From positions 1-64,000 of the IMG/VR virus record IMGVR_UViG_3300013120_000738: 64,000 nt of DNA; one strand, 5' to 3'. Positions 1-18,846 of the stretch are shown in pieces. The notes under the pieces are model-generated. The model was given only the letters and a program-made list of their open reading frames with translations, did no database searches and was not told the DNA's origin. Positions within the stretch are counted from its first letter, which is position 1. Each line of letters begins with the position of its first letter. The position numbers and the translations under genes were made by a program.

Positions 1-400
1 GCCATCCAGACAAAATTTACTCCTTGAAATTCTTTTGCCCCTTTCCCTAGCAACAACAATCCGCCACCAAGTAATAGGGCACCTATACCAACAAGTGCTG
101 CACCAATAGTAAATGGTACACCAGCAGCCCATAGCATGGTACCACCAATTGCCAGCTGGCCTGCCATCCAAACAAAATTGACCCCTTGAAATTCCTTAGC
201 ACCCTTCCCAAGTGCTTGCATTCCAAACCCGAGAAGTAACGCGCCTATCCCAACAAATGTAGCACCTATTGCGAATGGCACACCAGCAGCCCATATCATC
301 GTACCACCGACCATGAGCTGGAACGCCATACCAATAAAGTCGACACCTTTAAATTCTTTTGCACTCTCGGCAAGTGCTGACATTCCTGTACCGAGTAGCT
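1..400 (-). repeat. 162-bp (54-aa) imperfect tandem repeats in the tape measure gene
   Basis: gccat(c/a) units begin at 1, 163 and 325, encoding K/SAKEF(Q/K)GV(N/D)F(V/I)(W/G)M repeats. Confidence 0.8.
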
Positions 401-3026
401 TAGCCCCAAATCCGATCAATATAGCAGCTACAGCAAATAGCGATCCTGCAACTAACAAAGTAACACCAGCATATATAAGCGCCACAGCTATTAACGGCAT
501 CAAGAGCATAACTGGTATTAATATAAGGACTGCTCCGGTAATCTTCCCGGCCGACTCCCACAATGCAGTAGCAAAATCTTTTATCATATCACCCGAGAGT
601 TTCTCGAGTGCTGTAGCAAGCATACCTAAAGGTGGACCCAATAGCCATGCGGATATAGCCAGCATGCTCATAGTAGTAGCCAGAACTATAAGTCCTGGAG
701 CACTTATTAAGGCTGCATAGGCAAGTATCATCATGCCAGCAGCCACCATCGGCAATTTGACCCATAGTGGCGGAGAATGAGGGCCAATAGCTTCCACAAT
801 CATCATGAAAGCTTCAGCTGCCATCTTTAGACCGGCACCCATTAACCAGGCAGCAGCACCAATCAGAGCTAGAGCACCACCAATAGCCCATAATATTCCC
901 ACAACAGGTCCTGCTACAGGTGCTAATGCTCCTACAGCGGTCACAAGAATATATGTAGCTGCCACCAACAACAATACTCCAATCAGTATAGTATGGAATG
1001 GTATATCAACAAGTATTTTCATACCTTGTGCAAAGAAATACGCACCAGCACCAGCCATCATCAGCGCAGCACCAAGAGCAAGCAATCCTAGAGCATTAGC
1101 AGCTGCAGCGCTGCCAACAGCTCTTATACCTCTAGCGATACCCCTCATCACTTGATATATAACTTCACCAACAGCTACCGCGAAATCTACAATAAGCCCC
1201 AAGAAAGTGCTGATTATATTAGCAACACCACTTATAAGCCCAGGAAGTCCGGCAAATCCAAGTGCAAATGAAGTTAATGCCCCAGCAGCTATGATAATCA
1301 CCATAGCAAGGCCTAACACCATCCCCGCCAAAACTCTCATCCATTTTATTATGAATCCGAGTGGGCCTAATGCATTTTCTAGCCATACTGTGAATTTATG
1401 TATACCAGTAATAACACTAGCTATACCCCATACAACCCACTCAAGAACTACAAGTAATGGATACAAACCCTCGGATATAACTGACAAGATTACACCAAAA
1501 GCACCTGCCATTCCTGCTTTTATTTGGTTCCATTTAGCAGAAGCAGTAGTGTAAGTCTCATTTAGCCTCTTCCTATAATTCAAGTCCGCTGCTAATTTAT
1601 CATGTAGGGCATCATATGTCCCTAGCATTTCTACATTGCCTTTGTTTATCTCATTCTGCCTTCTAATCATCATGAGCAAGGCATTTTTATCCATAAAGAG
1701 GATCTGCTCAGATAATAAATTAAGTCTAGCTTGTTGCTCGGCAGTTAACGTCGTCATCCTATCTATTTGGGTGGCTGCAGGTACTATACTTTTAGCTATT
1801 TCAAGTATACCCTCTCCCATTTGATTATATCGTTCAGTTGGGTCAGCATTCGGGTCTATACGCAGCTTACCATAGAAAACGGAAGCCTCAATCCCAGTAA
1901 GCTTCATCTTCTTCATTATATCATCAATAGCAGCAGCTGGGGCTCCCAATTCTTTACCAGCCTTTCTATATCCAGCTTCTGCTAATGTGAATTGTTCTAC
2001 AGCATCCTGACCGAACATAAATGCCATTTCTTGTGCAGTCTCTGTATTACTCTGCATCATACGATTCATGTCATCAGTGCTTAACGCGAATCGTCGTTGC
2101 GCTTCTATCAACATTCCTATATGTTTAGAAGATCTTTCAGCGTCTGATCCCGCTGCTCGTAGACCACGAGTATACTCTGCAAGCGTACCAGCAGATAATC
2201 CAGTTATCCGTTGAGCTCTTCCAACAGATTTAGCTAATTTGTCTATTTCATTAGTCGGTGTCTTAACATCAGCCAAGGCTTTATAGGCAGCCATTGCATC
2301 TTCACGTAAGACACCATATCTAGCAGATAGATATCTAGTTCTATTAGTAAGTTGCATCATCGAGTCGTAAACCCGATAATTCGCTTCCTTGAATTTTTCT
2401 GCCTCCTCGTCGAATTTCTGTATAATCCCCCATAATTTACGAGCGGCAGCTACTAATTTACGAAAATGCCCTTCATTCCGCCTCGTATTATCACCTATAC
2501 GTTCTCCAGCATCACCGATCGCCCGTTGTAGTCCTTGTTCTTCAGCTAATAATCTTAACTCATCGGCATGCCCCAAATTTTTCCGTCTTATTGCTTCATT
2601 GATATTCTCTAGACCCTTCAGAGCATCATCCTTGAGGATATCCTCATCTTTCAATATTTCATGTAGATCCTCTACTATATCCTTTTTCTCTTCTAATAAT
2701 TTTATTTCCTCTTTTAATCTGTCAAGATTATCAAGACCTAATTGGTCCATATCACCAAGAGTATCACTAGCACCTACAAAACTCTTCTCGACATCACTCC
2801 CACCAAGATTTATATCTTTAGCAATCCCTGCTATATCACTCAGATTAGTCTTCAGGGCATCAGTAATTCCCTCTATACTACCCAAAGCATTCCTAGCTGC
2901 CTCGCTTACCTCATTTTCCAAATTGGATATACGTTGACTAAAGTCCCCAAGCGCAGCATCTGCCTCCGCCGTCTCAAGGGCTAAAGATACCTGTAGGGCA
3001 TATACATTCTGGTCAACACCGGCCAT
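1..3026 (-). CDS. Tape measure protein (partial, runs off the window edge)
   Basis: Hand-translated open frame from ATG 3026 (MAGVDQNVYALQVSLALE...) to base 1, >1000 aa. N-terminal coiled-coil/charged region, then a long Ala/Gly/Leu-rich hydrophobic region with 54-aa repeats. Lies downstream of the tail genes. Not in the ORF track because it has no stop in the window. Confidence 0.8.
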   Translation of the reverse strand, partial: MAGVDQNVYALQVSLALETAEADAALGDFSQRISNLENEVSEAARNALGSIEGITDALKTNLSDIAGIAKDINLGGSDVEKSFVGASDTLGDMDQLGLDNLDRLKEEIKLLEEKKDIVEDLHEILKDEDILKDDALKGLENINEAIRRKNLGHADELRLLAEEQGLQRAIGDAGERIGDNTRRNEGHFRKLVAAARKLWGIIQKFDEEAEKFKEANYRVYDSMMQLTNRTRYLSARYGVLREDAMAAYKALADVKTPTNEIDKLAKSVGRAQRITGLSAGTLAEYTRGLRAAGSDAERSSKHIGMLIEAQRRFALSTDDMNRMMQSNTETAQEMAFMFGQDAVEQFTLAEAGYRKAGKELGAPAAAIDDIMKKMKLTGIEASVFYGKLRIDPNADPTERYNQMGEGILEIAKSIVPAATQIDRMTTLTAEQQARLNLLSEQILFMDKNALLMMIRRQNEINKGNVEMLGTYDALHDKLAADLNYRKRLNETYTTASAKWNQIKAGMAGAFGVILSVISEGLYPLLVVLEWVVWGIASVITGIHKFTVWLENALGPLGFIIKWMRVLAGMVLGLAMVIIIAAGALTSFALGFAGLPGLISGVANIISTFLGLIVDFAVAVGEVIYQVMRGIARGIRAVGSAAAANALGLLALGAALMMAGAGAYFFAQGMKILVDIPFHTILIGVLLLVAATYILVTAVGALAPVAGPVVGILWAIGGALALIGAAAWLMGAGLKMAAEAFMMIVEAIGPHSPPLWVKLPMVAAGMMILAYAALISAPGLIVLATTMSMLAISAWLLGPPLGMLATALEKLSGDMIKDFATALWESAGKITGAVLILIPVMLLMPLIAVALIYAGVTLLVAGSLFAVAAILIGFGAKLLGTGMSALAESAKEFKGVDFIGMAFQLMVGGTMIWAAGVPFAIGATFVGIGALLLGFGMQALGKGAKEFQGVNFVWMAGQLAIGGTMLWAAGVPFTIGAALVGIGALLLGGGLLLLGKGAKEFQGVNFVWM

Positions 3027-3506: not shown

Positions 3507-3689
3507 ATGCATCTAGAAGTCACACAACCAGATGGGTCCATAGAATATGTGACCCCCACGGACATAGCCCGCGCCAGAATCTTCGCATCTTTCAACGAAG
3601 AACTGGCCTGGCTACTGTCCGCTCTCGATAATTTAACCCCCGGTAAATCCTTGCAACATGGCGGTAGGATTTGGAAACGCGTAAACTAA
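3507..3689 (+). CDS. Hypothetical protein
   Basis: Short ORF directly after the previous gene. Confidence 0.5.
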   Translation: MHLEVTQPDGSIEYVTPTDIARARIFASFNEELAWLLSALDNLTPGKSLQHGGRIWKRVN

Positions 3690-4183
3690 TTTATTCTAGT
3701 AACAGCTCTACACCTCTCCAAGAACTCTCCATCTGTCAAAGTATTCCTAGCCATATTAACCCACCAACACACAAGCCTAATATTATCCCTACTATAGTCC
3801 TTTAAACAGTTAATACGATCAACCGATATATTAGCATAATGTGAATCAGTAGTCATTGTTAATCCAGTAATTGCACATTTTCCTTCCTGTTCTTGCCATA
3901 ACTCAACTAAATCGTTATAAGTTATTGAACAATTAATGTTCTTACGATGTCTACATTTTTTAATCAACACTTTAAAGCGACCGTGAAGCGTCTGAGCCCA
4001 TTTTTTCTGGATTTCACTTATTTTACCAGCATTCTTTTCACGATATCGTTTAGCCTTGTGTCTTCCTTCTGGGCTATTCCGTTTTCTTCTTTTCTTTTCT
4101 AAGACATCTTCTCGATTTTTGAGATACCATTTTCGCCATCTATCCCTTTTTTTCTGTAGATCTATCATCAATACCCTCCACAA
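3686..4183 (-). CDS. HNH-like (His-Me finger) endonuclease
   Basis: Basic N-terminus; LWQEQEGKCAITG...SVDRI...Y...NIRLVCWWVNMARN motif typical of phage HNH-like proteins. Confidence 0.65.
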   Translation of the reverse strand: MWRVLMIDLQKKRDRWRKWYLKNREDVLEKKRRKRNSPEGRHKAKRYREKNAGKISEIQKKWAQTLHGRFKVLIKKCRHRKNINCSITYNDLVELWQEQEGKCAITGLTMTTDSHYANISVDRINCLKDYSRDNIRLVCWWVNMARNTLTDGEFLERCRAVTRIN

Positions 4184-4595
4184 CTAATTTACACCAATTC
4201 CGGAAATCACTGTCAGTCAACGTATTTCTAGCCATGTTGGCCCATTTACTAACAAATCTAATATTAGATAACTCATAAGGACCATGTGGTCTGATTCTAT
4301 CGATTGTCACAGCATCTGGAGATGGTCCGACATGATTATAAGTCATTGGAAGATTGCTTAAAGCACATCTCCCGCCTTGTTGTTCCCACAACAATTCTAA
4401 ATCTTCAATAGTAATATCAGTCCCGGCTCGTTTTCTAATATCTTTCAAAAGTTTATTAAACCTACCTCTTACTGTTCTACAGTATTCGTAATGCTTCTTT
4501 GCAAGTCTTTCTTTATTTAATTCTCTATACTTTTTATTCCGATCGAGTTCAGATTGTCGATGTTTCCGATAATATTGTCTTTGTTTAGTACCCAT
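4140..4595 (-). CDS. HNH-like endonuclease, paralogue of 3686-4183
   Basis: LWEQQGGRCALS...TIDRI...YELSNIRFVSKWANMARNTLTD. Confidence 0.65.
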   Translation of the reverse strand: MGTKQRQYYRKHRQSELDRNKKYRELNKERLAKKHYEYCRTVRGRFNKLLKDIRKRAGTDITIEDLELLWEQQGGRCALSNLPMTYNHVGPSPDAVTIDRIRPHGPYELSNIRFVSKWANMARNTLTDSDFRNWCKLVVEGIDDRSTEKKG

Positions 4596-7969: not shown

Positions 7970-9730
7970 CTAACGATCAGGAATAGTTCGAACATCTTTA
8001 GTATCTCCATTAGGATCTACAGCAGTTGGTAGGATTTCTACCTCTTCATCTAGTACCACTTGTGCGACATATAAGTTTCTACCATTAATCACTGACATCA
8101 CTCGAATGTTGATGTCAATTTCTTCACCATCCTTGGTGACCATTTTGCCAGAAACTTGTATGATGCCGCCTTTATTTAATTTTTCCAGAAGATCCGGATA
8201 CGTCATTCCTATTTGGTGTCTCTCGAATCTTCCTGGGGGGATTATTAGGTCAAGCTTTCTACCTATAGCTTCACCTTCTGTCCACCCAAGTAATTTTTGA
8301 GCACCATCATTCCACATAGCAATCGTACCATTCTTAGCATCACAAATAATATATGCTGTATCACTCATTTCAATTATTCTACGCCACTGATCTGCTCTCT
8401 TATTAGCCCTGTATATTGTTATGACTTGCCATAGGTCTTCCATCAAGAAAGTAACTTGCAAGACGTCATCTTGCGTATACGGTTTCTTCTTATTCCCAAG
8501 TCCTATAATTAGTCTACATTTCCCTTCAGTAAAAACTGGTACAGACATATATCGGCTCAATACTACTTTATGCTCTGCAGGGTGCTCTGCATTTTCATCC
8601 ATAGGCTTGCCACCAAAGTCATTGTTAACGTATGCCTTTTGTGTTCGAAATGGAATAGCCCATTGTGCTTCCCTTGCGATACCTTCTGCAATATCAAATT
8701 CAGCACGATCATTATGTATCTTATAATCCAACTGCATATTTTCAGACCAAACAGCTACTGTCACCGTATTTTCATCATTTTCATGAACATAGCCTATATA
8801 ACCATACCTACTACCAGTCAAGCGAATACATTCTTCTAGACAAAAATCCTTCAAACTCGCCTCAGTATGTGTACCAACATGGCTGTATAATTTAAGAGAA
8901 GCTTCTAATCTCTCTTGCGTTATACTAATCCTAACATCATTCACTTGTGCCACATGTAAACTATATCCAAGAAATGAAACCAAAAAAGCAATGATAAGAA
9001 TGATTATAGCAGATGATACTTTGCGTAATGTGTTTTCAGGCTTCCGCTTACGCGATTCATGTCTATCGTGGAGCCGCTTAAAAATCGGAGTAAGAGCACG
9101 AATGAACACAACAGAACCAACAAGTATGACCAAAACAGCAAAACTTGAAGCAATAACACCAGCCCTAATAAAAGGACTTCTGATTTCAGCAATATCCATT
9201 TTCGCCACTAATCCAAGATCGCAACAAATCATATCAACGGGTTCATATGCTGCAAGGACATATACACCTCTATAATCGCGACCTACCATGGAACCAGAGT
9301 GACCATTTAGAACCATTTGCATAGGCTCAGCATAATTAGATTTTAAAGCTATGATCTTACGATCTTCTACACCTGTATGGCGATGACTAAGTAGAAATAC
9401 TATATCACTACCTTCTCGTTCTGCTAATGTAAATTCTCCAGTTTTGCCAAAACCATTATATCTCCGATGTGCTTCAGTAATTTGAGTCAATGCTGCTTCA
9501 GATGCTTCATCTTGATCTTCAATTTGACTATGAGAGAATTTAGCTATTGACTCCATTAATCTGGCCTGGCTACGAGAAGTCTCAACTAATCTACGCTCAA
9601 CTTCATGTACTGCAGCATTATACGACAACACTATCGAGACAATACCAATAATCAATGACACACAAGTCATAACTATTAGTAAAAAATAAAATCTTTTACG
9701 ATCATCACGTATCATCGTTTGGCTCATCAT
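7970..9730 (-). CDS. Membrane sensor-like protein (TM-Cache-TM-TM-GAF-PAS) with no kinase or output domain
   Basis: Cache signature GRDYRGVYVLAAYEP...LGLVAKMD; GAF RYMSVPVF...GLGNKKKPY...DDV; PAS WNDGAQKLLGWTEGEAIG; the protein ends right after the PAS domain. Confidence 0.8.
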   Translation of the reverse strand: MMSQTMIRDDRKRFYFLLIVMTCVSLIIGIVSIVLSYNAAVHEVERRLVETSRSQARLMESIAKFSHSQIEDQDEASEAALTQITEAHRRYNGFGKTGEFTLAEREGSDIVFLLSHRHTGVEDRKIIALKSNYAEPMQMVLNGHSGSMVGRDYRGVYVLAAYEPVDMICCDLGLVAKMDIAEIRSPFIRAGVIASSFAVLVILVGSVVFIRALTPIFKRLHDRHESRKRKPENTLRKVSSAIIILIIAFLVSFLGYSLHVAQVNDVRISITQERLEASLKLYSHVGTHTEASLKDFCLEECIRLTGSRYGYIGYVHENDENTVTVAVWSENMQLDYKIHNDRAEFDIAEGIAREAQWAIPFRTQKAYVNNDFGGKPMDENAEHPAEHKVVLSRYMSVPVFTEGKCRLIIGLGNKKKPYTQDDVLQVTFLMEDLWQVITIYRANKRADQWRRIIEMSDTAYIICDAKNGTIAMWNDGAQKLLGWTEGEAIGRKLDLIIPPGRFERHQIGMTYPDLLEKLNKGGIIQVSGKMVTKDGEEIDINIRVMSVINGRNLYVAQVVLDEEVEILPTAVDPNGDTKDVRTIPDR

Positions 9731-10055
9731 CCTCCTCCGACTCATCAGGAACCGGTTCAATATGGAGATTTATCTTCCCCTGAAAGAAAATCTTCATTAA
9801 ATCAAGTGCCGTTGCCCCACCTATTCCAGCTAGCCCACTCACGGCTAACAAAAATGGTATATTTCCTTTGCCTTCAAAGTAATTATACCACATTAAAGCA
9901 ACAATTAATCCAATGATTCCACTATATAAGATAGACGATAAGACGGATCTGAGATTCAGATCTTCTTTACCTCTCAGTAAAGCTGCTAGTCCTCCAAGAG
10001 CTGCGACGCCGAAGGCCGACATGAAGACTAGTATATGAGTAAGAGTCCACACCAT
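9705..10055 (-). CDS. Putative holin (LydA-like, 3 TM)
   Basis: Small protein with three hydrophobic segments, GGLAA and GLAGIGGATALD patterns, and an acidic C-tail. Confidence 0.65.
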   Translation of the reverse strand: MVWTLTHILVFMSAFGVAALGGLAALLRGKEDLNLRSVLSSILYSGIIGLIVALMWYNYFEGKGNIPFLLAVSGLAGIGGATALDLMKIFFQGKINLHIEPVPDESEEDDEPNDDT

Positions 10056-10089
10056 AAGTTAACCCAGTCATAAGTTAACCCAGTCATAA
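10053..10089. repeat. Perfect 16-bp tandem duplication at the holin translation start
   Basis: cataagttaacccagt x2 plus cataa. Confidence 0.9.
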
Positions 10090-10090
10090 A

Positions 10091-10582
10091 TTATCCTACA
10101 CAAGCATGAAGGCACAAACCATACACGAAAAGCCCAAACAAACTAAGTATGATACACCAAAAGAACACACACCTCCAAAACCTAATTTTCCTCTCCTTCA
10201 GCAACAGATAAGCTTGAACAATAAGGGCATTTCCTATAAATTGCATATTCCCTTGACCCTTCCATAGGTATGTCAATGCTCCTGCATTATTAGCTTCCAG
10301 AATTAACTCAAGCTCTTCACTACCTGAAAAGACGACAACAGGGGGACTTTTATGTCGTCTATATCTAATATATTCAATAGTTTGTTTAGGTGTTGAATCT
10401 GGCAGATTCAGATCTAACAAAATCAAATCTGCATGTCTTTCACGTCCATGTGCATCATGTAGAGTACTAACAACCTCCAATGATATCAACTTATTCTTAT
10501 CATTGTGTTCTAATACTCGCTGCATTAGAGCGATATCGACTTGTAAGTCCTCGACCCACAATATCTTCATCGATTTCATCAT
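10091..10582 (-). CDS. Response-regulator receiver domain with C-terminal TM helix
   Basis: KILWVED, LILLDLNLPD (phospho-Asp), VVFSG, YLWK; C-terminal hydrophobic FFWCIILSLFGLFVYGLC. Confidence 0.85.
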   Translation of the reverse strand: MMKSMKILWVEDLQVDIALMQRVLEHNDKNKLISLEVVSTLHDAHGRERHADLILLDLNLPDSTPKQTIEYIRYRRHKSPPVVVFSGSEELELILEANNAGALTYLWKGQGNMQFIGNALIVQAYLLLKERKIRFWRCVFFWCIILSLFGLFVYGLCLHACVG

Positions 10583-10607: not shown

Positions 10608-11474
10608 TCATGATATCGTAAGAACAAATTTCCTGCTCACCCTAGTCGAACCATTCGGCAGCGTCAAAGTGATGTAATACCTATATGTCCCCTTTAAAAA
10701 ACGAGACGTGTTGAGATCATACTGGACTACCCACGGATTTGACCTATACGATCCTTGTCTGATACCAATCCTACATGCCTCAGCATCGGCAAGCAATTCA
10801 TTGTGCTGAGTTTCTATCGTGATAGTCGGCTGCAAAAATGGAATGATAGGATTAACAAGATTGAAATTATAATCATACAAAGGCAAAGGCATAAGCCCAA
10901 CCTCAAGAGGCCTCGCCTCAGGTGTATGAAATTTCTGATCTAGTGGTTCAAAACCAAACCGAATAGTCTGTAACCGATCGTCGCAAAACCATTCTTCTGG
11001 ATAAACCCAAAACCGATGACAACACCTTAATAACAATGGGTCATAGGTGTCCTCATCCATATCACAATCTGTAGCATCCGTACCTAACGCTCCACAAGGA
11101 TTATCGGCGAAATAGTACCAAACATCAAAATAGACATCAGGTACTTCAAAGTCCTCTGAAATAGCATAGGGAAGGTGATATCTGCCAGCTACCGGTGTAT
11201 CATCCTCTGATGGCTCTGTGCAGCAGTCGCCAGCTTCAGAAGCTATCTCATGGCGACAAATTGGAGATGGGTATAGAGGATCATCGAGATCAACAACAGG
11301 CACAGTAGCCACCAAATTATGTGGAACCACCGATGACTTATAGATCTCAATTTGCCTGATAGCGTATGGATCAGTTAATACCCCATTCTTTCGGAAATCC
11401 ACGTTTAGATCAACCACACTGCCTCTTCTGGCAGAGATTCGTGGATACGCACCAGTAAGCTGTGCACATGTCAT
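10608..11474 (-). CDS. Putative virion structural protein
   Basis: Beta-rich acidic ORF in the tail operon; SD GGGAG before ATG 11474. Confidence 0.55.
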   Translation of the reverse strand: MTCAQLTGAYPRISARRGSVVDLNVDFRKNGVLTDPYAIRQIEIYKSSVVPHNLVATVPVVDLDDPLYPSPICRHEIASEAGDCCTEPSEDDTPVAGRYHLPYAISEDFEVPDVYFDVWYYFADNPCGALGTDATDCDMDEDTYDPLLLRCCHRFWVYPEEWFCDDRLQTIRFGFEPLDQKFHTPEARPLEVGLMPLPLYDYNFNLVNPIIPFLQPTITIETQHNELLADAEACRIGIRQGSYRSNPWVVQYDLNTSRFLKGTYRYYITLTLPNGSTRVSRKFVLTIS

Positions 11475-11524
11475 ACCACACACTCCCTAAAAGCTATAAT
11501 ATCTTTGATGTGTGGTGATGCAGA

Positions 11525-11737
11525 CTATCGTCGACGCACAGAAGGCATAGACGGTATAGATGGGCGAGGAATATGTGGGAGAGAATGCGAACCCATTTGT
11601 CGCTTTTCCCTATCGGCCCTCTCCTTGAACTCCCTCTCAAGCCTTTTCATATACCAATTTCTATCCTCGGCCGTCATATTATCCTGTTCGAATATATCAA
11701 GATTACCATAATGCTTTAATTGGAACTGCTGTTCCAT
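11525..11737 (-). CDS. gp51-like tail/baseplate assembly protein (possible frameshift extension of 11766-12845)
   Basis: DNMTAEDRNWYMKRL resembles the gp51-type NMxPxERxxYxxLL motif; no suitably spaced SD. Confidence 0.55.
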   Translation of the reverse strand: MEQQFQLKHYGNLDIFEQDNMTAEDRNWYMKRLEREFKERADREKRQMGSHSLPHIPRPSIPSMPSVRRR

Positions 11738-11765
11738 AATATTATTATATAGACGGTCATACTCC

Positions 11766-12845
11766 TCACTGCTCTGTCGGGCGAAAAAAGTTTTCTGTTA
11801 TCGGCAACTCCACTTTAAAATCAGTCTCACAATCGGGGCACGTCACCGCAACAGTATTATCAATACCAGGAGTATTCTCACGCAACCATTCTCTGATTGC
11901 CGTAGTATCTCGCCCGTGTAACTTCCCAATAAAATTCCTAATAGTAAAGAGATCACTCTCCCCCATCACATTGACAATAATCTTCTCAAGATTATCAGTT
12001 ATAGTATCATCAAGTTCTTGTTGTTGAGCTGCACCACCTCCCCCAGCTCCACGACCATACTTCAGCGGGTTAGTCTTAACATTACCAGGTCTTGCGTACG
12101 ACTTCTTCTTGAATTTCCTTTTACCAAGCATCTCATTAGCATCCTTGGCACGTAGGAATCGCACACCAACCCAGAATTCTTTCTTGGTTACTTTACTGAA
12201 ATATGGTAATATGACCTTAAACGGTTCTGAACCCAGAGAATTATTAGCCCAGACTATGGTTTGAGCTAGTTCATTAAGATCATATATGTGTGTATTGGTC
12301 GCATTGCAGGTCACATTCGGGCATGTTACTGCAAATTCGTATAGATTACCATAAGTAATACCACGCAGGAAATAAAGTAGAAAAACTCTATCACCCAACA
12401 ATAAGTCCGTGGCATCAAATTCATCTGGGAACTGGCAGCATTCCTTGAACAGATAATCTATCGATTGGCCACTCTGTGCCAGCCTTTGTGTAGCCAAGAC
12501 TTTCTCGGCGGTTTGGCCCATCGCTTTTACCATGATGATACCATCTGACCATCCGTAGTACATTCCTCTACTTGGAAGATGGCATTCTTCCCATGGTATA
12601 AGTTGTTCTTCTGAGGCCTGTAGTACTCGATTGAGTACTTCTCTAGAGGTGAGTTCTTCGTCTTGGAGCCCTAGGTCACCAACCCGTTCATCCATTTTGT
12701 TTACTTGATCTTCATCAAGTAATTGAGGCCCACCATCAACTGGCATTTTAGGTTCATCGGGACCATTGATGTTTAATTCCTCTTCGGGAGGAGCAGCACC
12801 ATCAGGAAGATTGTCTTCCGATTCAGGAATCTTTTCGTCGGCCAT
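11766..12845 (-). CDS. gp26-like baseplate hub/tail assembly chaperone
   Basis: LPSRGMYY, DLLLGDRVFLLYFLR, two CP..C zinc motifs, ends ...NFFRP; follows the tube genes. Confidence 0.75.
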   Translation of the reverse strand: MADEKIPESEDNLPDGAAPPEEELNINGPDEPKMPVDGGPQLLDEDQVNKMDERVGDLGLQDEELTSREVLNRVLQASEEQLIPWEECHLPSRGMYYGWSDGIIMVKAMGQTAEKVLATQRLAQSGQSIDYLFKECCQFPDEFDATDLLLGDRVFLLYFLRGITYGNLYEFAVTCPNVTCNATNTHIYDLNELAQTIVWANNSLGSEPFKVILPYFSKVTKKEFWVGVRFLRAKDANEMLGKRKFKKKSYARPGNVKTNPLKYGRGAGGGGAAQQQELDDTITDNLEKIIVNVMGESDLFTIRNFIGKLHGRDTTAIREWLRENTPGIDNTVAVTCPDCETDFKVELPITENFFRPTEQ

Positions 12846-12925: not shown

Positions 12926-13486
12926 CTATTCAGGCGGTAATTCTTCCGCCCAATCATATGCTACAGTGACTTCTACAGTTTTGACGTCACTATTAGTATA
13001 GGTCATTTCTCCATGTCGTATAACTTTTGGCCAACTACCATTTAGTAGCCATCCCTGTACTGATTTACCAGTCGGGAGGAAAGTCTCTAGATGTGATTGT
13101 TTCTTATATTCACTAGCAACTTTCAGGCCTTTCATAGATGTCCATATAGTCTCGCGCCATTCCTTTAAGTATTGTAACATTCCTACTGTATCATACCATG
13201 TTACTTTAATATCATCCCATGTAACACTCTTTGCCCATTTATATTCTAGGCTCGCCCCAAGAACCGTTTCTTGGTTGACAGTAAATGTAGGAAGTGTCAT
13301 ATCCTTAAGATGGATAAGAGCACTTCTAGCTCCAGGTGGGCTTTCTAATGTGTCTTCAAAGATTTTGAAGATTTCCCACATATAAATATAGTAGTATTCT
13401 GACTCAGAAGGTACGTGCTTCGAACTATCGGGCACTGTCATGCCACCAACAGGATCAGCAAAGCCTTGTACAGCAAATCCTGGCAT
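12926..13486 (-). CDS. Tail tube-like protein (gp19/gp54 family paralogue)
   Basis: MPGF start, LPTF, W.DI.VTWYD, GSWP...GEMTY...V.V..D.A. Confidence 0.75.
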   Translation of the reverse strand: MPGFAVQGFADPVGGMTVPDSSKHVPSESEYYYIYMWEIFKIFEDTLESPPGARSALIHLKDMTLPTFTVNQETVLGASLEYKWAKSVTWDDIKVTWYDTVGMLQYLKEWRETIWTSMKGLKVASEYKKQSHLETFLPTGKSVQGWLLNGSWPKVIRHGEMTYTNSDVKTVEVTVAYDWAEELPPE

Positions 13487-13487
13487 A

Positions 13488-14096
13488 TTATCCCTCCCTC
13501 TCCCTTGCCTTATTGAAGCGGAGAGTAACTGTTATATCTGCTATATCTGTATCAGCATAGGATAAATCTGATGGGGTCACTTTAGATGGCCAACAATCCA
13601 TCAATTCATATTGCCATATATATTTTGCTTCACCATCAAGCATTGCTAATTTGCATAATCTATAATAGTCTTTTGGTACATTATGCGTGCTAGTCCTAAG
13701 GTCAAGAATTGATTTACTATTTCTAGGATCTCCAGCCCACCAGTCATATATCAACATTGCTGGACTATCTTCACCAGCGCTGTTTACAACCTCATAGAAT
13801 GAGACTTCTACAGGTTTCCATCTATTTTTACCGGGTCTATAAATTTCATCTTGAGCACTATGTATAGTTATTTCATCGAATTCTGGGGTGGGTCTACTGC
13901 ATTTATACGCATAGACCAGCAATGATTGCCAGTCTAATGATGAACCACCAAGAGATTGAGCTGCAAATATTTCCCAAATATATCTATGTTTTCTAGCGGA
14001 TTCTGTTATATAGGAAGGAGGGTCGTACGGGGGTTTGCCCTCTAAGCCCGGTGGGGCACAGTCTGAGTCAGGTGCTGGTATATTAAAGCCTGGCAT
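13488..14096 (-). CDS. Tail tube-like protein (paralogue)
   Basis: MPGF start, SRPT..F, RPGKNRWKPV.VSFY, DCWP..VTPSDLSY. Confidence 0.75.
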   Translation of the reverse strand: MPGFNIPAPDSDCAPPGLEGKPPYDPPSYITESARKHRYIWEIFAAQSLGGSSLDWQSLLVYAYKCSRPTPEFDEITIHSAQDEIYRPGKNRWKPVEVSFYEVVNSAGEDSPAMLIYDWWAGDPRNSKSILDLRTSTHNVPKDYYRLCKLAMLDGEAKYIWQYELMDCWPSKVTPSDLSYADTDIADITVTLRFNKAREREG

Positions 14097-14123
14097 ATCA
14101 TATGTACAACCCAAACACCTGCA

Positions 14124-14726
14124 CTACATTCCAGGCGGGCATGCAGGAGTAACCGGCTCGTTAGTAGCACTGTTCTGGCAGCTACGAATCGCACGATCGT
14201 ACCGCATCGTCGCTTCGATGGTCATCAGATCGGTTGAGGTGTAATCAAGCTCTTGCCAATTGATTTCAGCTGGCCATGTACCATATAGCTCCCATCTCTC
14301 AGAGACAGCAGTAGCACCCATTCCGCCCACTAAGGCCATACCGCCGACCATAGCAAGCTGGGCAAACTTCTTATACTTTTCAGGATGTGCCACCTGAATA
14401 GTCGTCATATTTACTACTGTTTCCAGCCAGTAATAAATATCCGCAGATATATCGGGTTTCTGTTCCCCATCATACCATACCAGAGTAATCGGGTCCCAGT
14501 CTTGCTTACCAGCAAAACGGACCACTTCCTGATTATGGTGCATTTCAGGCTGTTCGAACTTGAAGCTAGGTCTTGAGGCAGACTGCAGCATCAGTCGAGA
14601 TATGGTGGAAAATGGCGTACCTTCACCACGTAGAATAACCTCGAAAACCCACCGATGCTTACGGCGGACTTCCATGGTGTTGGGCACTCCGCCACCGCCA
14701 ATGCCATTCACATTGAAACCAGGCAT
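14124..14726 (-). CDS. Major tail tube protein (T4 gp19-like)
   Basis: ASRPSF, FAGKQDWDPITL.WYD, GTWP...ELDY...ATMRYD; directly after the sheath gene; host-like codon usage. Confidence 0.85.
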   Translation of the reverse strand: MPGFNVNGIGGGGVPNTMEVRRKHRWVFEVILRGEGTPFSTISRLMLQSASRPSFKFEQPEMHHNQEVVRFAGKQDWDPITLVWYDGEQKPDISADIYYWLETVVNMTTIQVAHPEKYKKFAQLAMVGGMALVGGMGATAVSERWELYGTWPAEINWQELDYTSTDLMTIEATMRYDRAIRSCQNSATNEPVTPACPPGM

Positions 14727-14736
14727 GTTTTACTCC

Positions 14737-17598
14737 TTAGGAAACAATACCACCTGCCGCCAAGACTTCTTCTGCCGAGAAGCTAGCACCAGTTCGCATT
14801 ATGACTAAGTTAAGGACGATAAATTCAACCGTCCTCGTCGGCTGCAAGAACACTGATACCCACAACTCGTTACGATCTATACGTTCAGGTGTATTATTGG
14901 TCTGATCACAAACCACCTTAAAAGCCTGCAGACCACGCCGAGCCTTGATATCACCAAGGAATGGGTTGATCGAAGCCTCGACCTGTCGCCACAAGACAGC
15001 GTCATTCGGCTCAAAGATGAAGTTTCTTAGCAACTGGATCAGATTCTTCTTGATGAAGATCAAAAGCATTCTGACATTTACACGATCCAGAGCTGATTGT
15101 GTTCTTTGAAGCGTTCGCTGGCCCCAAACGGTAATACCGTCTTGCGGGAACTTCACGATCGGGTTCACCGCATTACCAGAACCATATAGCAGATCCCGCT
15201 CACCCATGGCCGGTGTGTATTCAACATCCAACGCCGTGAGCAATCTACCACGTTTCAGACCAGCAGGAGCGAACCATTGTTCCGTGTCTCTCGCAGTCCT
15301 CGAGAAAACTGCAGAAACATGACCGCTAGGCGGCACCCACATCTCAGCAGCCGAGAACTGATCAAAGATCCGCAGCCAACCCCAGTATAGAGCACCGTAG
15401 CTGCTATTGATGGCAGCCCTGAGGTCTGATAGCAACATCCCATTATGCCAGTCAACAACCTGTTGCGGTCTCAGGCCAAACGGCGGATCGACAATGTACA
15501 GTACATCGCCACGGCTCTCACAAATCTGCAAAGCCGTCCCGATTACAGCACCAGTCGAGAAGCCAGGAGTAACCAACAGGTTAATGTCGATCGTCTCAGG
15601 ATTCTGGAATGCGTACAGACCAGTCGATGTCGCTGGATTTCCTATGACTGCCGCATCCAATTCACTTGAGTATGCGGGGTCAGTAGGAACACCATTGGCT
15701 TGACCAGCATATTCCCTCATGTTGAACTGCGAGGGTAGGCGTACCACAAATGTCGAAAGATCATTGACATTGTTTTCTAGGAACGCCGGACGCTCTTCCC
15801 AGTTTAGGTAGTTATTACCATTAGTACCACCAAGGGTCGTCCCAGGATTGATAACGTTGCCGATATACCTGGCATCTCTCTTATCGAAGGTGATATCTTC
15901 GACAACGTCCAAGGGCTGATCATTCGCATCGTAAAGCGTCAGCTTATATCGCCCAGAAAGATCACCAACACCATCGGTGAAGGCTTCCAGGGTCACAGAG
16001 AAATCATCAACCCACGTTCCAGGGCTCGTCGCTACCAACCATCCAACGATCCCTTGGAAGTACGCCGTATCGCTGACGCACTCGTCACTTAGAGGATCAT
16101 CCTCACAGCTCAATGGGCTTGATGGAGTTACCTCTCCAGCATCCGGCAATTCCGTTCGGCTATCGAAGAAACCACGGTAAGCTCGTTTATATGGGTATGG
16201 AATATTCACCTCTTCGGCGAATCGTAACGTCTTGAGATTCGAGTAACTCGCCCGCATTATCAGAGTGTCTAATTGGCGACCAACAGAGGTCACGATTACA
16301 ACGTGAGTAGTACCGCCTGGGACAGTAAGTTCAAAAGAGTCCCATAGGACTTCACCCGCTACGACACCCGCACCATCAATGCTCGCGGCTACCGATGCAG
16401 TAGTCTGATCAAGGCCTACTGGTACGTTGAATTCCTCAATTTGTGATGTTGCTTCACCAAGCAATTCCATCTTGACGCGGTTCTTTTGAGTCGTAATATC
16501 ATAAGGACCGGCATCAAGACCTAACAAGTAGGATCGAGGAATATCCCAAGCGTATTGAGTGGTACCTACCTCTAGAGCGAATGCTTCGGTACCAGTCAGT
16601 TGGATTCGTTCACCAGCAACCGATGTCCTGATCTGGGGAACCGTCGTCGAACCATCTTCCAGAGTATACTCAACAAAGATGTAATCTGATTCCACTGCAG
16701 CAGTCAGAACAGCATTTGCCGCGTTAACAAATGCTTGTACGGTCGTGTAGGAGGCTGCGGGCATTTGATAGGTGCCATTACTAACACCTTCAACCTCAAC
16801 AGTAAAATCTCTGTTGTCCGGAGCCACGCTGAACATAAAGGTGTCATTCTCGTCCAGGACACCACCGGTGACTACCACTCTGACATACAGACCATCGCCG
16901 ATACGAATGTTTTGCGATGTACCGTTGTCGTCATCATCAACCAGAGTACCTTCTGCGACAACCTCACCATCACTATTCCTGACGATCTCAAAACCGGCAC
17001 CGTCAACTGGAGCTCCAGCTGAGACAGAAGGAGCCGAAGTGATGATCATCACAAAAGAATCATCGACTGAACCGGTATAAGTACCAGTAATTGTCAGCGT
17101 AGCGGTGGTAGCACCATATGTGCTCGATACTTCAACGTCGCTGTAATCGACAGCACTTGTTGATGCGTCATGGAAGGTATACGGTTCGGCATTATCGCCG
17201 ATACCATCACCAATCTCTCTTAGTGTTAGTCGACCATAATCGATACCAGTGAAAAGAGGTATTCTACCCCATCCTTTTCCACGACCTCCTGAGGTATCAA
17301 TGCAGATGTCGTCTAAGGCAGCTACTTGGCCCGTCTCGCATTCCACACCAACACGCATAGCATAGCATTCTGCACCTTCCTCCATGAATGAGAGGATGGC
17401 GTACATGAAATAACTTTCTGGGAACGGTTCGCCAAAAGCATCCAGAGCTAATTGAGCATTAGCGAGCAACAGTGGCTCATTCATAGGACCTTTGTTAGCT
17501 GTACCGATGAAAGCTGGGCGCAGAGGCCCAATAGCAGCCGGTAGAACACTAAGGTCTATTTCTCGCGGGAAGACGCCCGGACTGAGGTATACTGCCAT
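14737..17598 (-). CDS. Tail sheath protein (T4 gp18-like) with inserted domains
   Basis: MAVYLSPGVFPREIDLS start, WFAPAG..RG, NPIV.FP..G..VWGQRTLQ, RVNVR; 953 aa. Confidence 0.95.
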   Translation of the reverse strand: MAVYLSPGVFPREIDLSVLPAAIGPLRPAFIGTANKGPMNEPLLLANAQLALDAFGEPFPESYFMYAILSFMEEGAECYAMRVGVECETGQVAALDDICIDTSGGRGKGWGRIPLFTGIDYGRLTLREIGDGIGDNAEPYTFHDASTSAVDYSDVEVSSTYGATTATLTITGTYTGSVDDSFVMIITSAPSVSAGAPVDGAGFEIVRNSDGEVVAEGTLVDDDDNGTSQNIRIGDGLYVRVVVTGGVLDENDTFMFSVAPDNRDFTVEVEGVSNGTYQMPAASYTTVQAFVNAANAVLTAAVESDYIFVEYTLEDGSTTVPQIRTSVAGERIQLTGTEAFALEVGTTQYAWDIPRSYLLGLDAGPYDITTQKNRVKMELLGEATSQIEEFNVPVGLDQTTASVAASIDGAGVVAGEVLWDSFELTVPGGTTHVVIVTSVGRQLDTLIMRASYSNLKTLRFAEEVNIPYPYKRAYRGFFDSRTELPDAGEVTPSSPLSCEDDPLSDECVSDTAYFQGIVGWLVATSPGTWVDDFSVTLEAFTDGVGDLSGRYKLTLYDANDQPLDVVEDITFDKRDARYIGNVINPGTTLGGTNGNNYLNWEERPAFLENNVNDLSTFVVRLPSQFNMREYAGQANGVPTDPAYSSELDAAVIGNPATSTGLYAFQNPETIDINLLVTPGFSTGAVIGTALQICESRGDVLYIVDPPFGLRPQQVVDWHNGMLLSDLRAAINSSYGALYWGWLRIFDQFSAAEMWVPPSGHVSAVFSRTARDTEQWFAPAGLKRGRLLTALDVEYTPAMGERDLLYGSGNAVNPIVKFPQDGITVWGQRTLQRTQSALDRVNVRMLLIFIKKNLIQLLRNFIFEPNDAVLWRQVEASINPFLGDIKARRGLQAFKVVCDQTNNTPERIDRNELWVSVFLQPTRTVEFIVLNLVIMRTGASFSAEEVLAAGGIVS

Positions 17599-17656
17599 GA
17601 TGGGTACTCCCAAATCATCAAATTTCCATCTTCATGGGTATATTTGCCGAGATGAA

Positions 17657-17973: not shown

Positions 17974-18846
17974 TCAATCACTAACAGTCTGAGTAGGTTC
18001 ATACCATAGATTACCACCAGCCCCAACCGATTGTGACTTAGAAGCAAGTAGTATATTACTAACCCGCTCCTTAAGCACTACAGTCCTACCAAGTACGGTC
18101 TTGACAATCTTCTCGGGCAACGGCAACCAAGCTTCAGCAGTACAATTAAATTCATAGCGTACTCTAGCAAGTTGATCAAACCCCGCCTCTTTATCACTTG
18201 CATCAGTAGAGCCGCCAAAACGTATTTGTACGCCACCCTCCAACTTGCCATCGAACATAATGAACTCAGCAAGCGGATTAAAACGTGTTAGCACTTGATA
18301 TAATATATACTCTGCATCCCTCTTACGTTCTGCCCAAATTATCAAATTATACTCAACAAGCCACGGAGTAGGCCGAAACACTAAAGCAATCTGATCATAT
18401 TGCTTGCTCAAATATCTCCCGGTCATAGCACCATATGGAGGACTATACTTCTCTGGATTGAATTCATGGCTCTCACGGCTTACCGCCGCCACAGGCAACC
18501 TAGCCCTACCCTCTTTCAGCTCATCAGCCCAAATCATAAGGCTCTTATCGCCACCAGCAACTTTCACCCGCATAAAACGATAATTGTCTTTAGTAGGCAC
18601 TCTTATACCAGACCAATATTGCTTCATAGCATAGTCTAGCGACCTAAACCCAGGAATTAAGAATTCCTCTAAATGTTCAGGATAGGATAGAAAATCAGTA
18701 CCATCAAACGGATTTCTACCGCCCTCGACATGACTAAGCTGCCTGACTGCAGGGACTTCACCAAGCCCAAACGGTACCTCCGTAGGCGGTGTTCGAAGTT
18801 TCTCACCCCTGACTGAGAAGTCAGCATCAAAATCATATACTGGCAT
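17974..18846 (-). CDS. Tail terminator / sheath stabiliser (gp15-like)
   Basis: P...EY.L.IW......A..I..Q+L..F.P pattern; position upstream of the sheath gene. Confidence 0.7.
   Translation of the reverse strand: MPVYDFDADFSVRGEKLRTPPTEVPFGLGEVPAVRQLSHVEGGRNPFDGTDFLSYPEHLEEFLIPGFRSLDYAMKQYWSGIRVPTKDNYRFMRVKVAGGDKSLMIWADELKEGRARLPVAAVSRESHEFNPEKYSPPYGAMTGRYLSKQYDQIALVFRPTPWLVEYNLIIWAERKRDAEYILYQVLTRFNPLAEFIMFDGKLEGGVQIRFGGSTDASDKEAGFDQLARVRYEFNCTAEAWLPLPEKIVKTVLGRTVVLKERVSNILLASKSQSVGAGGNLWYEPTQTVSD

Follow-up and report, generated by a model that had tools for sequence, protein, structure and literature searches.

Whether two adjacent reading frames in a phage tail module represent two genes or one gene decoded in two ways is the question raised by this locus, which comprises a gp26-like gene on the minus strand and a short open reading frame (ORF) beyond its end. 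The window, by which we mean the whole 64-kb stretch that was analysed, is the first 64 kb of a 227,725-bp IMG/VR virus record (IMGVR_UViG_3300013120_000738) with an estimated completeness of 63%. The source virus is a huge marine phage; a search of sequencing runs found partial matches in marine metagenomes only, and a megablast search of the region against isolate phages gave zero matches. A preliminary description of the locus had proposed a +1 or -2 frameshift joining gp26-like and gp51-like tail chaperones. Comparison with related phages indicates that the gp26-like gene is very probably decoded in two ways, via a programmed +1 frameshift at UUU_CGC. The elements of this junction are listed below, with lengths in amino acids (aa).

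12845..11766, minus strand: gp26-like coding sequence in the 0 frame, 359 aa, the putative short, 'G-like' product (PF12322, phrog_150)
11800..11798, minus strand: TAA that closes the +1 frame, four codons before the slip codon
11778..11789, minus strand: putative shift site TTT TTT CGC CCG, with the T6 run at 11789..11784 and CGC at 11783..11781
11782..11528, minus strand: +1-frame extension, 85 aa (ARQSSEEYDRLYNNIMEQQFQLKHYG...RRR), the putative 'T-like' part, conserved as protein in 66 relatives
11768..11766, minus strand: 0-frame stop TGA, five codons after the slip codon
11737..11735, minus strand: ATG of MEQQ, where gene callers start a 70-aa ORF (11737..11525)

The gp26-like gene ends GAA AAC TTT TTT CGC CCG ACA GAG CAG TGA. 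After the TAA, the +1 frame has no stop between 11797 and 11528, a stretch of 90 codons, and reads QKTFFARQSSEEYDRLYNNI-MEQQ... (QKTFFARQSSEEYDRLYNNIMEQQ...) down to a stop at 11527..11525. The gene end, the preceding TAA and the +1 reading into MEQQ had all been described exactly in the preliminary account. A +1 shift would give a fused product of 439 aa (354 + 85), encoded by join(12845..11784, 11782..11528), with the predicted junction ...ITENFF-ARQSSEEYDR... and the junction peptide NFFARQSSEEYDR; a -2 slip would instead give NFFFARQ. The TGA of the gp26-like gene lies 28 nucleotides (nt) before the MEQQ ATG. As had been noted earlier, this ATG lacks a properly spaced Shine-Dalgarno (SD) motif, because the sole upstream GGAG (11765..11762) is 24 nt away and nothing SD-like occurs at positions -5 to -16. 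In comparison, an SD-like 4-mer occurs at -5 to -16 in 38% of this genome's long ORFs, against a background of 7.5%. The MEQQ ATG is probably merely an internal Met codon of the extension.

The putative shift site is invariant in its core across related phages. Homologues of the 359-aa protein number in the hundreds; they are 335-377 aa long, and many lie on contigs of 340-440 kb. Two IMG/VR scans yielded 80 related loci (45-63% protein identity), among which 69 junction sequences are distinct. All 69 carry TT[TC] TTT CGN, with the second Phe codon always TTT and the Arg codon always CGN (CGC 45, CGT 20, CGG 3, CGA 1, AGR 0). The variants recorded were TTTTTTCGC (39 junctions), TTTTTTCGT (20), TTCTTTCGC (6), TTTTTTCGG (2), TTTTTTCGA (1) and TTCTTTCGG (1). 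A T6 run was present in 62 junctions and TTC TTT CGN in 7. Codon usage in this genome as a whole is more even, with AGR making up 48% of Arg codons and TTC 48% of Phe codons. We note that the 69 junctions are phylogenetically related, so counts such as 69/69 are not independent trials; given this kinship, neighbouring synonymous sites in the same alignment provide a fair control. Third-position entropy was 0.00 bits for the second Phe codon and 0.45 for the first, compared with about 0.9-1.0 for nearby two-fold codons.

Conservation of the protein sequence continues from the site into the +1 frame. Across relatives the 0-frame stop falls 2-13 codons past the slip codon and is mostly TGA, a by-product of the sequence NNT GAN with which the +1 frame encodes a conserved Glu or Asp. 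In all 66 junctions with complete downstream sequence, no stop interrupts the +1 frame between the site and the end of an extension of 64-105 codons. Its translations can be aligned from their first residues, and protein conservation begins at the slip site, 15 codons before the Met. The extension consensus is ARxSxxEYERxYxxLMEQQFQLKxYGxLSLFEQxxMTAEDRAWWxKRLEKE, followed by a Pro/Ser/Arg-rich tail. An AlphaFold2 (AF2) model of the extension, built from a 34-sequence alignment, had a predicted local distance difference test score (pLDDT) of ~95 for residues 1-60, with helices at 5-24, 30-34 and 38-64. The first of these predicted helices spans the supposed start Met and begins 11 residues before it. 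Searches of the extension against Pfam, PHROGs and PDB sequences gave nothing significant, and a fold search of BFVD had a best E-value of 0.18.

The same two-frame arrangement is found in distant homologues from isolate phages. In Flavobacterium phage immuto, Bacillus phages SP-15 and HSE3, and Microcystis phage Mel-JY01, the gene occupies the classical chaperone slot, in the order sheath, tube, 'baseplate hub subunit', small hypothetical ORF, and tape measure or long tail gene. In each isolate homologue the shifted frame is open from a conserved FF motif to just before the next gene, with the following sites and shift directions.

SP-15: TTT TTT CAC, +1
Bacillus phage HSE3 and Streptococcus phage GXN1: TTC TTT CGT CCC, +1
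Mel-JY01: TTT TTT TGG, +1
immuto: TTT CTT TGG, +1
LR756508: TTT CTA, +1
Stenotrophomonas phage RAS14 (locus L107, 2229-2483): AGT TTT TTT ATC, with a T7 run, -1 at a canonical-looking heptamer
LR756511 (locus L013, 2190-2474): GGT TTT TTC TTC, -1 at a canonical-looking heptamer

Among 547 six-frame pieces, a hidden Markov model (HMM) of the extension gave its seven best scores to exactly these shifted ORFs, with 8e-7 for HSE3, 9e-7 for GXN1, 5e-3 for Mel-JY01 and weak values for the others. The -1 extensions in RAS14 and LR756511, both huge or jumbo phages, indicate that the direction of the shift has changed within one protein family. None of the isolate homologue records examined annotates a chaperone or a slippage event.

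From these patterns of sequence and conservation we infer a slip of the following kind. Most ribosomes would stop at the TGA (11768..11766) and release the 359-aa protein. A fraction would slip by +1 while tRNA-Phe occupies the second UUU (11786..11784) in the P site; the tRNA would re-pair from UUU to UUC (11785..11783), which the C of the following CGC allows. The next codon would then be GCC (11782..11780), and reading 85 codons would complete the 439-aa fusion. In relatives, the codon read after the slip could also be GTC, GAC or GGC. The need for a C after UUU in this re-pairing accounts for the Arg codon always being CGN. The invariant core of the site is TTT plus C (TTT CGN), not the T6 run: TTT C is present in all 69 junctions as well as in SP-15, HSE3, GXN1 and LR756508.

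Sites of this type are known elsewhere. The sequence UUU_Ynn is documented as particularly liable to +1 shifts in bacteria, influenza PA-X uses UCC_UUU_CGU and the amalgaviruses use UUU_CGN (PMC5009743), which bears out an earlier remark that UUU_CGN is a +1 shift site of RNA viruses. The site described here shares its tetranucleotide logic, a wobble pairing of tRNA-Phe with UUU that becomes a Watson-Crick pairing with UUC, with influenza A PA-X, the Amalgaviridae and Yersinia YopN-TyeA, and like them it has no obvious stimulatory structure and is expected to shift at a low level. Unlike PA-X and the Amalgaviridae, it belongs to a bacterial host, a double-stranded DNA phage and a putative morphogenetic chaperone. 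Compared with PA-X-type sites, the preceding UUU/UUC and the following CCN are also conserved here, but this may reflect only the FFRP protein motif.

We considered three other explanations for the two frames. If the locus held two independent genes, ribosomes would start the 70-aa ORF at its own ATG (11737), possibly by re-initiating past the TGA, and no fusion would be made. Gene callers do predict ORFs of 63-80 aa here, the 28-nt spacing makes coupling conceivable, and 48 of 63 aligned relatives have ATG in the Met column, so some independent initiation there is conceivable and may occur alongside the frameshift in some phages. In the other 15 relatives this column holds CTG, CTT, CTC, TTA, TTG, AGG or CAG (reported as Leu, Gln, Arg and Lys codons), and starting at the next in-frame ATG would cut off the block that is most conserved. 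An SD-like motif precedes the ATG in 6 of 50 relatives, which is the background level. Between the usual stop and the Met, a stretch that would be intergenic if there were two genes, entropies at the three codon positions of the +1 frame were 1.05, 0.82 and 1.69 bits, a three-periodic pattern that is a coding signature. Both protein conservation and a confidently predicted helix begin upstream of the Met, and the annotated small ORFs of HSE3, SP-15, immuto and RAS14 start far inside the conserved shifted ORF. Two separate genes would also leave the invariant TTT CGN and the absence of AGR unexplained, and we regard this arrangement as very unlikely. The preliminary description had singled out the site and the sequence upstream of the Met as the places where homologues would be informative; the former proved conserved in every junction, and the latter is conserved as protein from the slip site onward.

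A frame change on the T6 run itself could come about by a -2 slip of the ribosome or by RNA polymerase slippage, with one U lost or two gained. Homopolymers are classical substrates for such events, most of the junctions (62/69) do carry T6, and the -1 relatives RAS14 (T7) and LR756511 (GGT TTT TTC) use long T runs. A run of six T is nevertheless short for slippage by bacterial RNA polymerase. In 7 of 69 junctions and in GXN1 and HSE3 the site is TTC TTT CGN, where the longest T run is 3, which excludes both a -2 slip and T6 polymerase slippage as the general mechanism; immuto (TTT CTT TGG) and LR756508 (TTT CTA) also lack a run, and the invariant C after TTT is needed only by re-pairing from UUU to UUC. 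We therefore consider a frame change on the T6 run very unlikely. Of the two directions proposed in the preliminary description, the -2 shift is dropped, and the comparative data all agree with a +1 slip in which tRNA-Phe moves from UUU to UUC. An artefact or a decaying gene, that is, an indel introduced at the homopolymer during assembly or a single ORF that has freshly broken, would be in keeping with metagenomic assembly and with homopolymers being error-prone. The same two-frame layout with a nearby 0-frame stop recurs in 69 distinct contigs from many samples and in the isolates SP-15, HSE3, GXN1, immuto, Mel-JY01 and RAS14, and an in-frame fusion of 430-460 aa was absent from the 120 best homologues listed (length window 197-628 aa). 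The chance that the layout is artefactual or degenerate appears slight indeed.

The family assignment of the 0-frame product places its end at the slip site. The product matched PF12322 (T4_baseplate) with 33.6 bits (cut-off 24.5), aligning residues 121-355 to profile positions 37-219, and phrog_150 with an E-value of 8.5e-14, aligning residues 84-356 to profile positions 13-234; both matches finish at residues 355-356, which is the slip site. With hhalign, VTCPDCETDFKVELPITENFF aligned with IKCPECGKTHAHVIRGLKEFF of T4 gp26, each with a CPxC zinc-ribbon strand and, beyond it, an (E)xFF motif that closes the domain, and residues C336, C339, F353 and F354 were invariant across 56 homologues. In the AF2 model of the 359-aa protein (pLDDT 82, predicted template modelling score 0.76), an acidic disordered N-terminus precedes a domain at ~63-168; four cysteines (C175, C180, C336, C339) make up a zinc ribbon that has a helical insert, and ELPITENFF-RPTEQ is the C-terminal motif. 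In a Foldseek search of the PDB, the top match was 2ob9, the HK97 tail assembly chaperone, and the third was 3klu, the Bacillus subtilis prophage protein YqbN, with E-values of 0.5 or worse. An independent all-against-all aligner placed 3klu (96 of 119 residues aligned) and 2ob9 (90 of 104) at ranks 1-2 among 48,161 chains, with root-mean-square deviations of 4.0-4.4 and both with a Z-score of 4.9, which is low by the aligner's own calibration. The model suggests a fold like that of tail assembly chaperones (TACs) for the N-domain, a resemblance to which we give weight because of the identity of the two top matches, not their scores. The two products would share this gp26-like core, and the long form would add a C-terminal three-helix module and a disordered Pro/Arg tail.

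The relationship to T4 is through gp26 and gp51. T4 gp26 (208 aa) and gp51 (249 aa) match PF12322 at residues 1-206 and 1-201, respectively, and phrog_150 at profile positions 14-235 and 13-280. Since both belong to these families, the two are paralogues, with gp51 carrying ~48 extra C-terminal residues compared with gp26 (residues 202-249, PF28602 in newer Pfam). They have been described as 'hub assembly chaperones', and gp51 is required for assembly yet absent from the virion, like G and GT (PMC3004832). The 0-frame product described here ends where gp26 ends, at the EFF motif, but T4 has two divergent paralogous genes without a frameshift, in contrast to one gene in two frames here. T4 genes 26 and 51 are transcribed divergently, not in tandem. 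Gene 26 ends TTC TTT GAG TTA CTA TAA with gene 25 next to it, and T4 thus lacks a frameshift at this point. T4 has two copies of PF12322; one copy each is present in this genome, four complete relatives (364-408 kb), SP-15, GXN1, HSE3, RAS14, LR756508 and LR756511.

The hhalign, phrog_634 and HMM searches all placed residues 25-51 of the extension against gp51 residues 221-247, in one register, but none of five tests reached significance. The gp26-like half of the earlier proposal thus holds by PF12322 and phrog_150, but the 70-aa ORF alone is not demonstrably gp51-like (hhalign E-values of 0.03-0.19). The fused product would have the layout of gp51, a PF12322 core with a C-terminal tail, an argument from architecture and copy number and not from tail homology. 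We see about an even chance that PF12322 proteins are the tail assembly chaperones of a large and ancient group of contractile-tailed phages, whose ancestor had one gene read in two frames at the FF motif, and that T4 hard-wired the short and long forms as gp26 and gp51. On this proposal of an ancestral frameshift, the shift at the FF motif would usually be +1 at UUU_C and sometimes -1.

The surrounding tail module, with all genes on the minus strand, provides the context for a chaperone function.

18846..17974, minus strand: gp15-like sheath stabiliser
17613..14737, minus strand: tail sheath gene (phrog_23, E-value 1.2e-80; PF17482 and PF04984)
14726..14124, 14114..13488 and 13486..12926, minus strand: three tandem gp19-like tail tube paralogues, directly upstream of the gp26-like gene (phrog_4542, phrog_45, weak PF06841)
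11483..10608, minus strand: conserved, Cys-rich 291-aa protein of unassigned family, directly after the extension, with no Pfam or PHROG match
10582..10091, minus strand: response-regulator receiver protein
10055..9705, minus strand: LydA-like holin
9760..7970, minus strand: 596-aa membrane protein without a family match
3686-4595, minus strand: two overlapping adjacent genes for EndoVII/HNH-like endonucleases (151 and 165 aa), whose PHROG matches mark them as paralogues, between a primase and the tape measure candidate
3..3026, minus strand: candidate tape measure gene, cut by the contig end (phrog_167, E-value 1.9e-8)

Frameshifting in chaperone genes is established for lambda G/GT and P2 E/E+E' (Levin 1993; Xu, Hendrix and Duda 2004; reviewed in PMC5009743). 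By analogy with these systems and with T4 gp26/gp51, we infer that the pair would act as non-virion chaperones made in a fixed ratio, which would guide the tape measure into the hub and initiate the tube. In G/GT-type systems the two products occur in a fixed low ratio and are missing from virions, the G part binding the tape measure and the T part the tube protein. As in lambda and P2, one gene would give a short and a C-terminally extended product through a slip near its 3' end, the extension ORF lacks start signals of its own, the gene follows the tube and precedes the tape measure, and the N-domain may likewise have a TAC-like fold (top matches 2ob9 and 3klu, with weak scores). Unlike in lambda and P2, the shift here would be +1 at UUU_CGN, not -1 at a heptamer, the product is a PF12322 protein with a zinc ribbon that matches no Phage_TAC family by sequence, and several unrelated genes lie between the pair and the tape measure. 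In this phage the pair directly follows three tube genes, and the full placement between tube and tape measure is seen in immuto, SP-15, HSE3 and Mel-JY01. This synteny in distant homologues, together with the weak but top-ranked fold match of the N-domain, supports the analogy with a G/GT-type chaperone fusion, as had been suggested for this locus.

Two precedents bear on how such systems vary. Bacillus phage 0305phi8-36 has a two-gene tail chaperone whose genes share a domain (PMC2147016), a precedent for two genes replacing the G/GT frameshift. The haloarchaeal myovirus HSTV-2 has a probable +1 shift in its tail chaperone (PMC5009743), a precedent for +1 instead of -1 in a myovirus chaperone. 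In both cases the protein family differs, and neither has been linked to gp26/gp51.

Several observations weigh against a frameshifted chaperone at this locus, in addition to the retention of the ATG in most relatives and the low fold-match scores. At least nine other genes and ~8.5 kb separate the frameshift site from the tape measure candidate downstream. The same order (gp26-like gene, then primase, then tape measure) is found in a complete relative (G002), and in close kin, too, several genes part the chaperone pair from the tape measure. The extension scored poorly against the gp51 tail, with hhalign E-values of 0.029 and 0.19, BFVD E-values above 3, phrog_634 E-values of ~0.05 in 4 of 34 sequences and gp51-tail HMM E-values of 0.5 or worse. 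With this non-significant similarity we count the result of the phrog_150 scan (33 versus 30 bits); for the family scan the fused frame was read via a four-letter step (TTTC read as F) over 11525-12377 on the minus strand, with no alternative code implied. No conserved stimulatory RNA structure was found, with 0 pairs predicted by RNAalifold on 32 junctions and a single-sequence folding z-score of -0.58. Inspection for an upstream SD-like stimulator likewise revealed nothing conserved beyond the codon requirements of ELPITE. The sequencing-run search matched marine DNA metagenomes only, with zero RNA runs containing this phage. Finally, in-frame TTT CGN is not avoided genome-wide, with 35 sites in 191 ORFs compared with ~32 expected. 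Since the motif is not avoided elsewhere, the site alone predicts only a low level of shifting, and a low shift efficiency, as for PA-X or lambda G/GT, would be the natural expectation.

Each element of the proposed system is known, namely the G/GT layout, the UUU_Ynn +1 shift and the gp26/gp51 family, and their combination appears to be new as far as we found. In our incomplete coverage of the literature, we found no paper linking gp26/gp51 or a 'baseplate hub subunit' to chaperone frameshifting. G/GT frameshifting has been described as conserved in long-tailed phages 'except T4' (PMC5009743). If the proposed frameshift is real, T4 gp26/gp51 would join the G/GT paradigm and T4 would be no functional exception. 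Hundreds of huge- and jumbo-phage genomes would then be mislabelled as carrying a 'baseplate hub subunit' and an orphan 'hypothetical protein' of 36-80 aa, when the actual second product would be a fusion of ~440 aa, which none of the public records examined annotates. The locus would also add a deeply conserved case from bacterial viruses of +1 shifting at UUU_CGN, and kin using -1 at the same protein position would show the shift direction evolving. A one-gene, two-frame ancestor with a two-gene descendant would be testable in T4, SP-15 or HSE3.

The neighbouring genes showed further features. The three tube paralogues (200, 208 and 186 aa) may represent the tube plus gp48/gp54-like tube initiators, and the relative G002 apparently has just two tube genes ahead of its gp26-like gene. 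The 291-aa protein may be part of the tail or hub that has escaped recognition. A gene of similar size without a PHROG match occupies this position in complete relatives (254 aa in G002 and 299 aa in G001), and a similar protein begins there in the close relatives L003-L005. Host-like genes for signalling and lysis are inserted at 7970-10582, after the tail chaperone and ahead of the tape measure, and further non-structural genes, namely the primase and the two EndoVII/HNH-like genes, follow downstream.

Elsewhere in the record, tRNA-Met(CAT) and tRNA-Pro(TGG) genes are located at 156903-157065. ARAGORN also predicted a tRNA with the anticodon TCA ('tRNA-SeC') at 218627-218701 on the minus strand, beyond the window, which may be a phage-borne opal-suppressor tRNA. 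The long ORFs of this genome appear intact under translation table 11.

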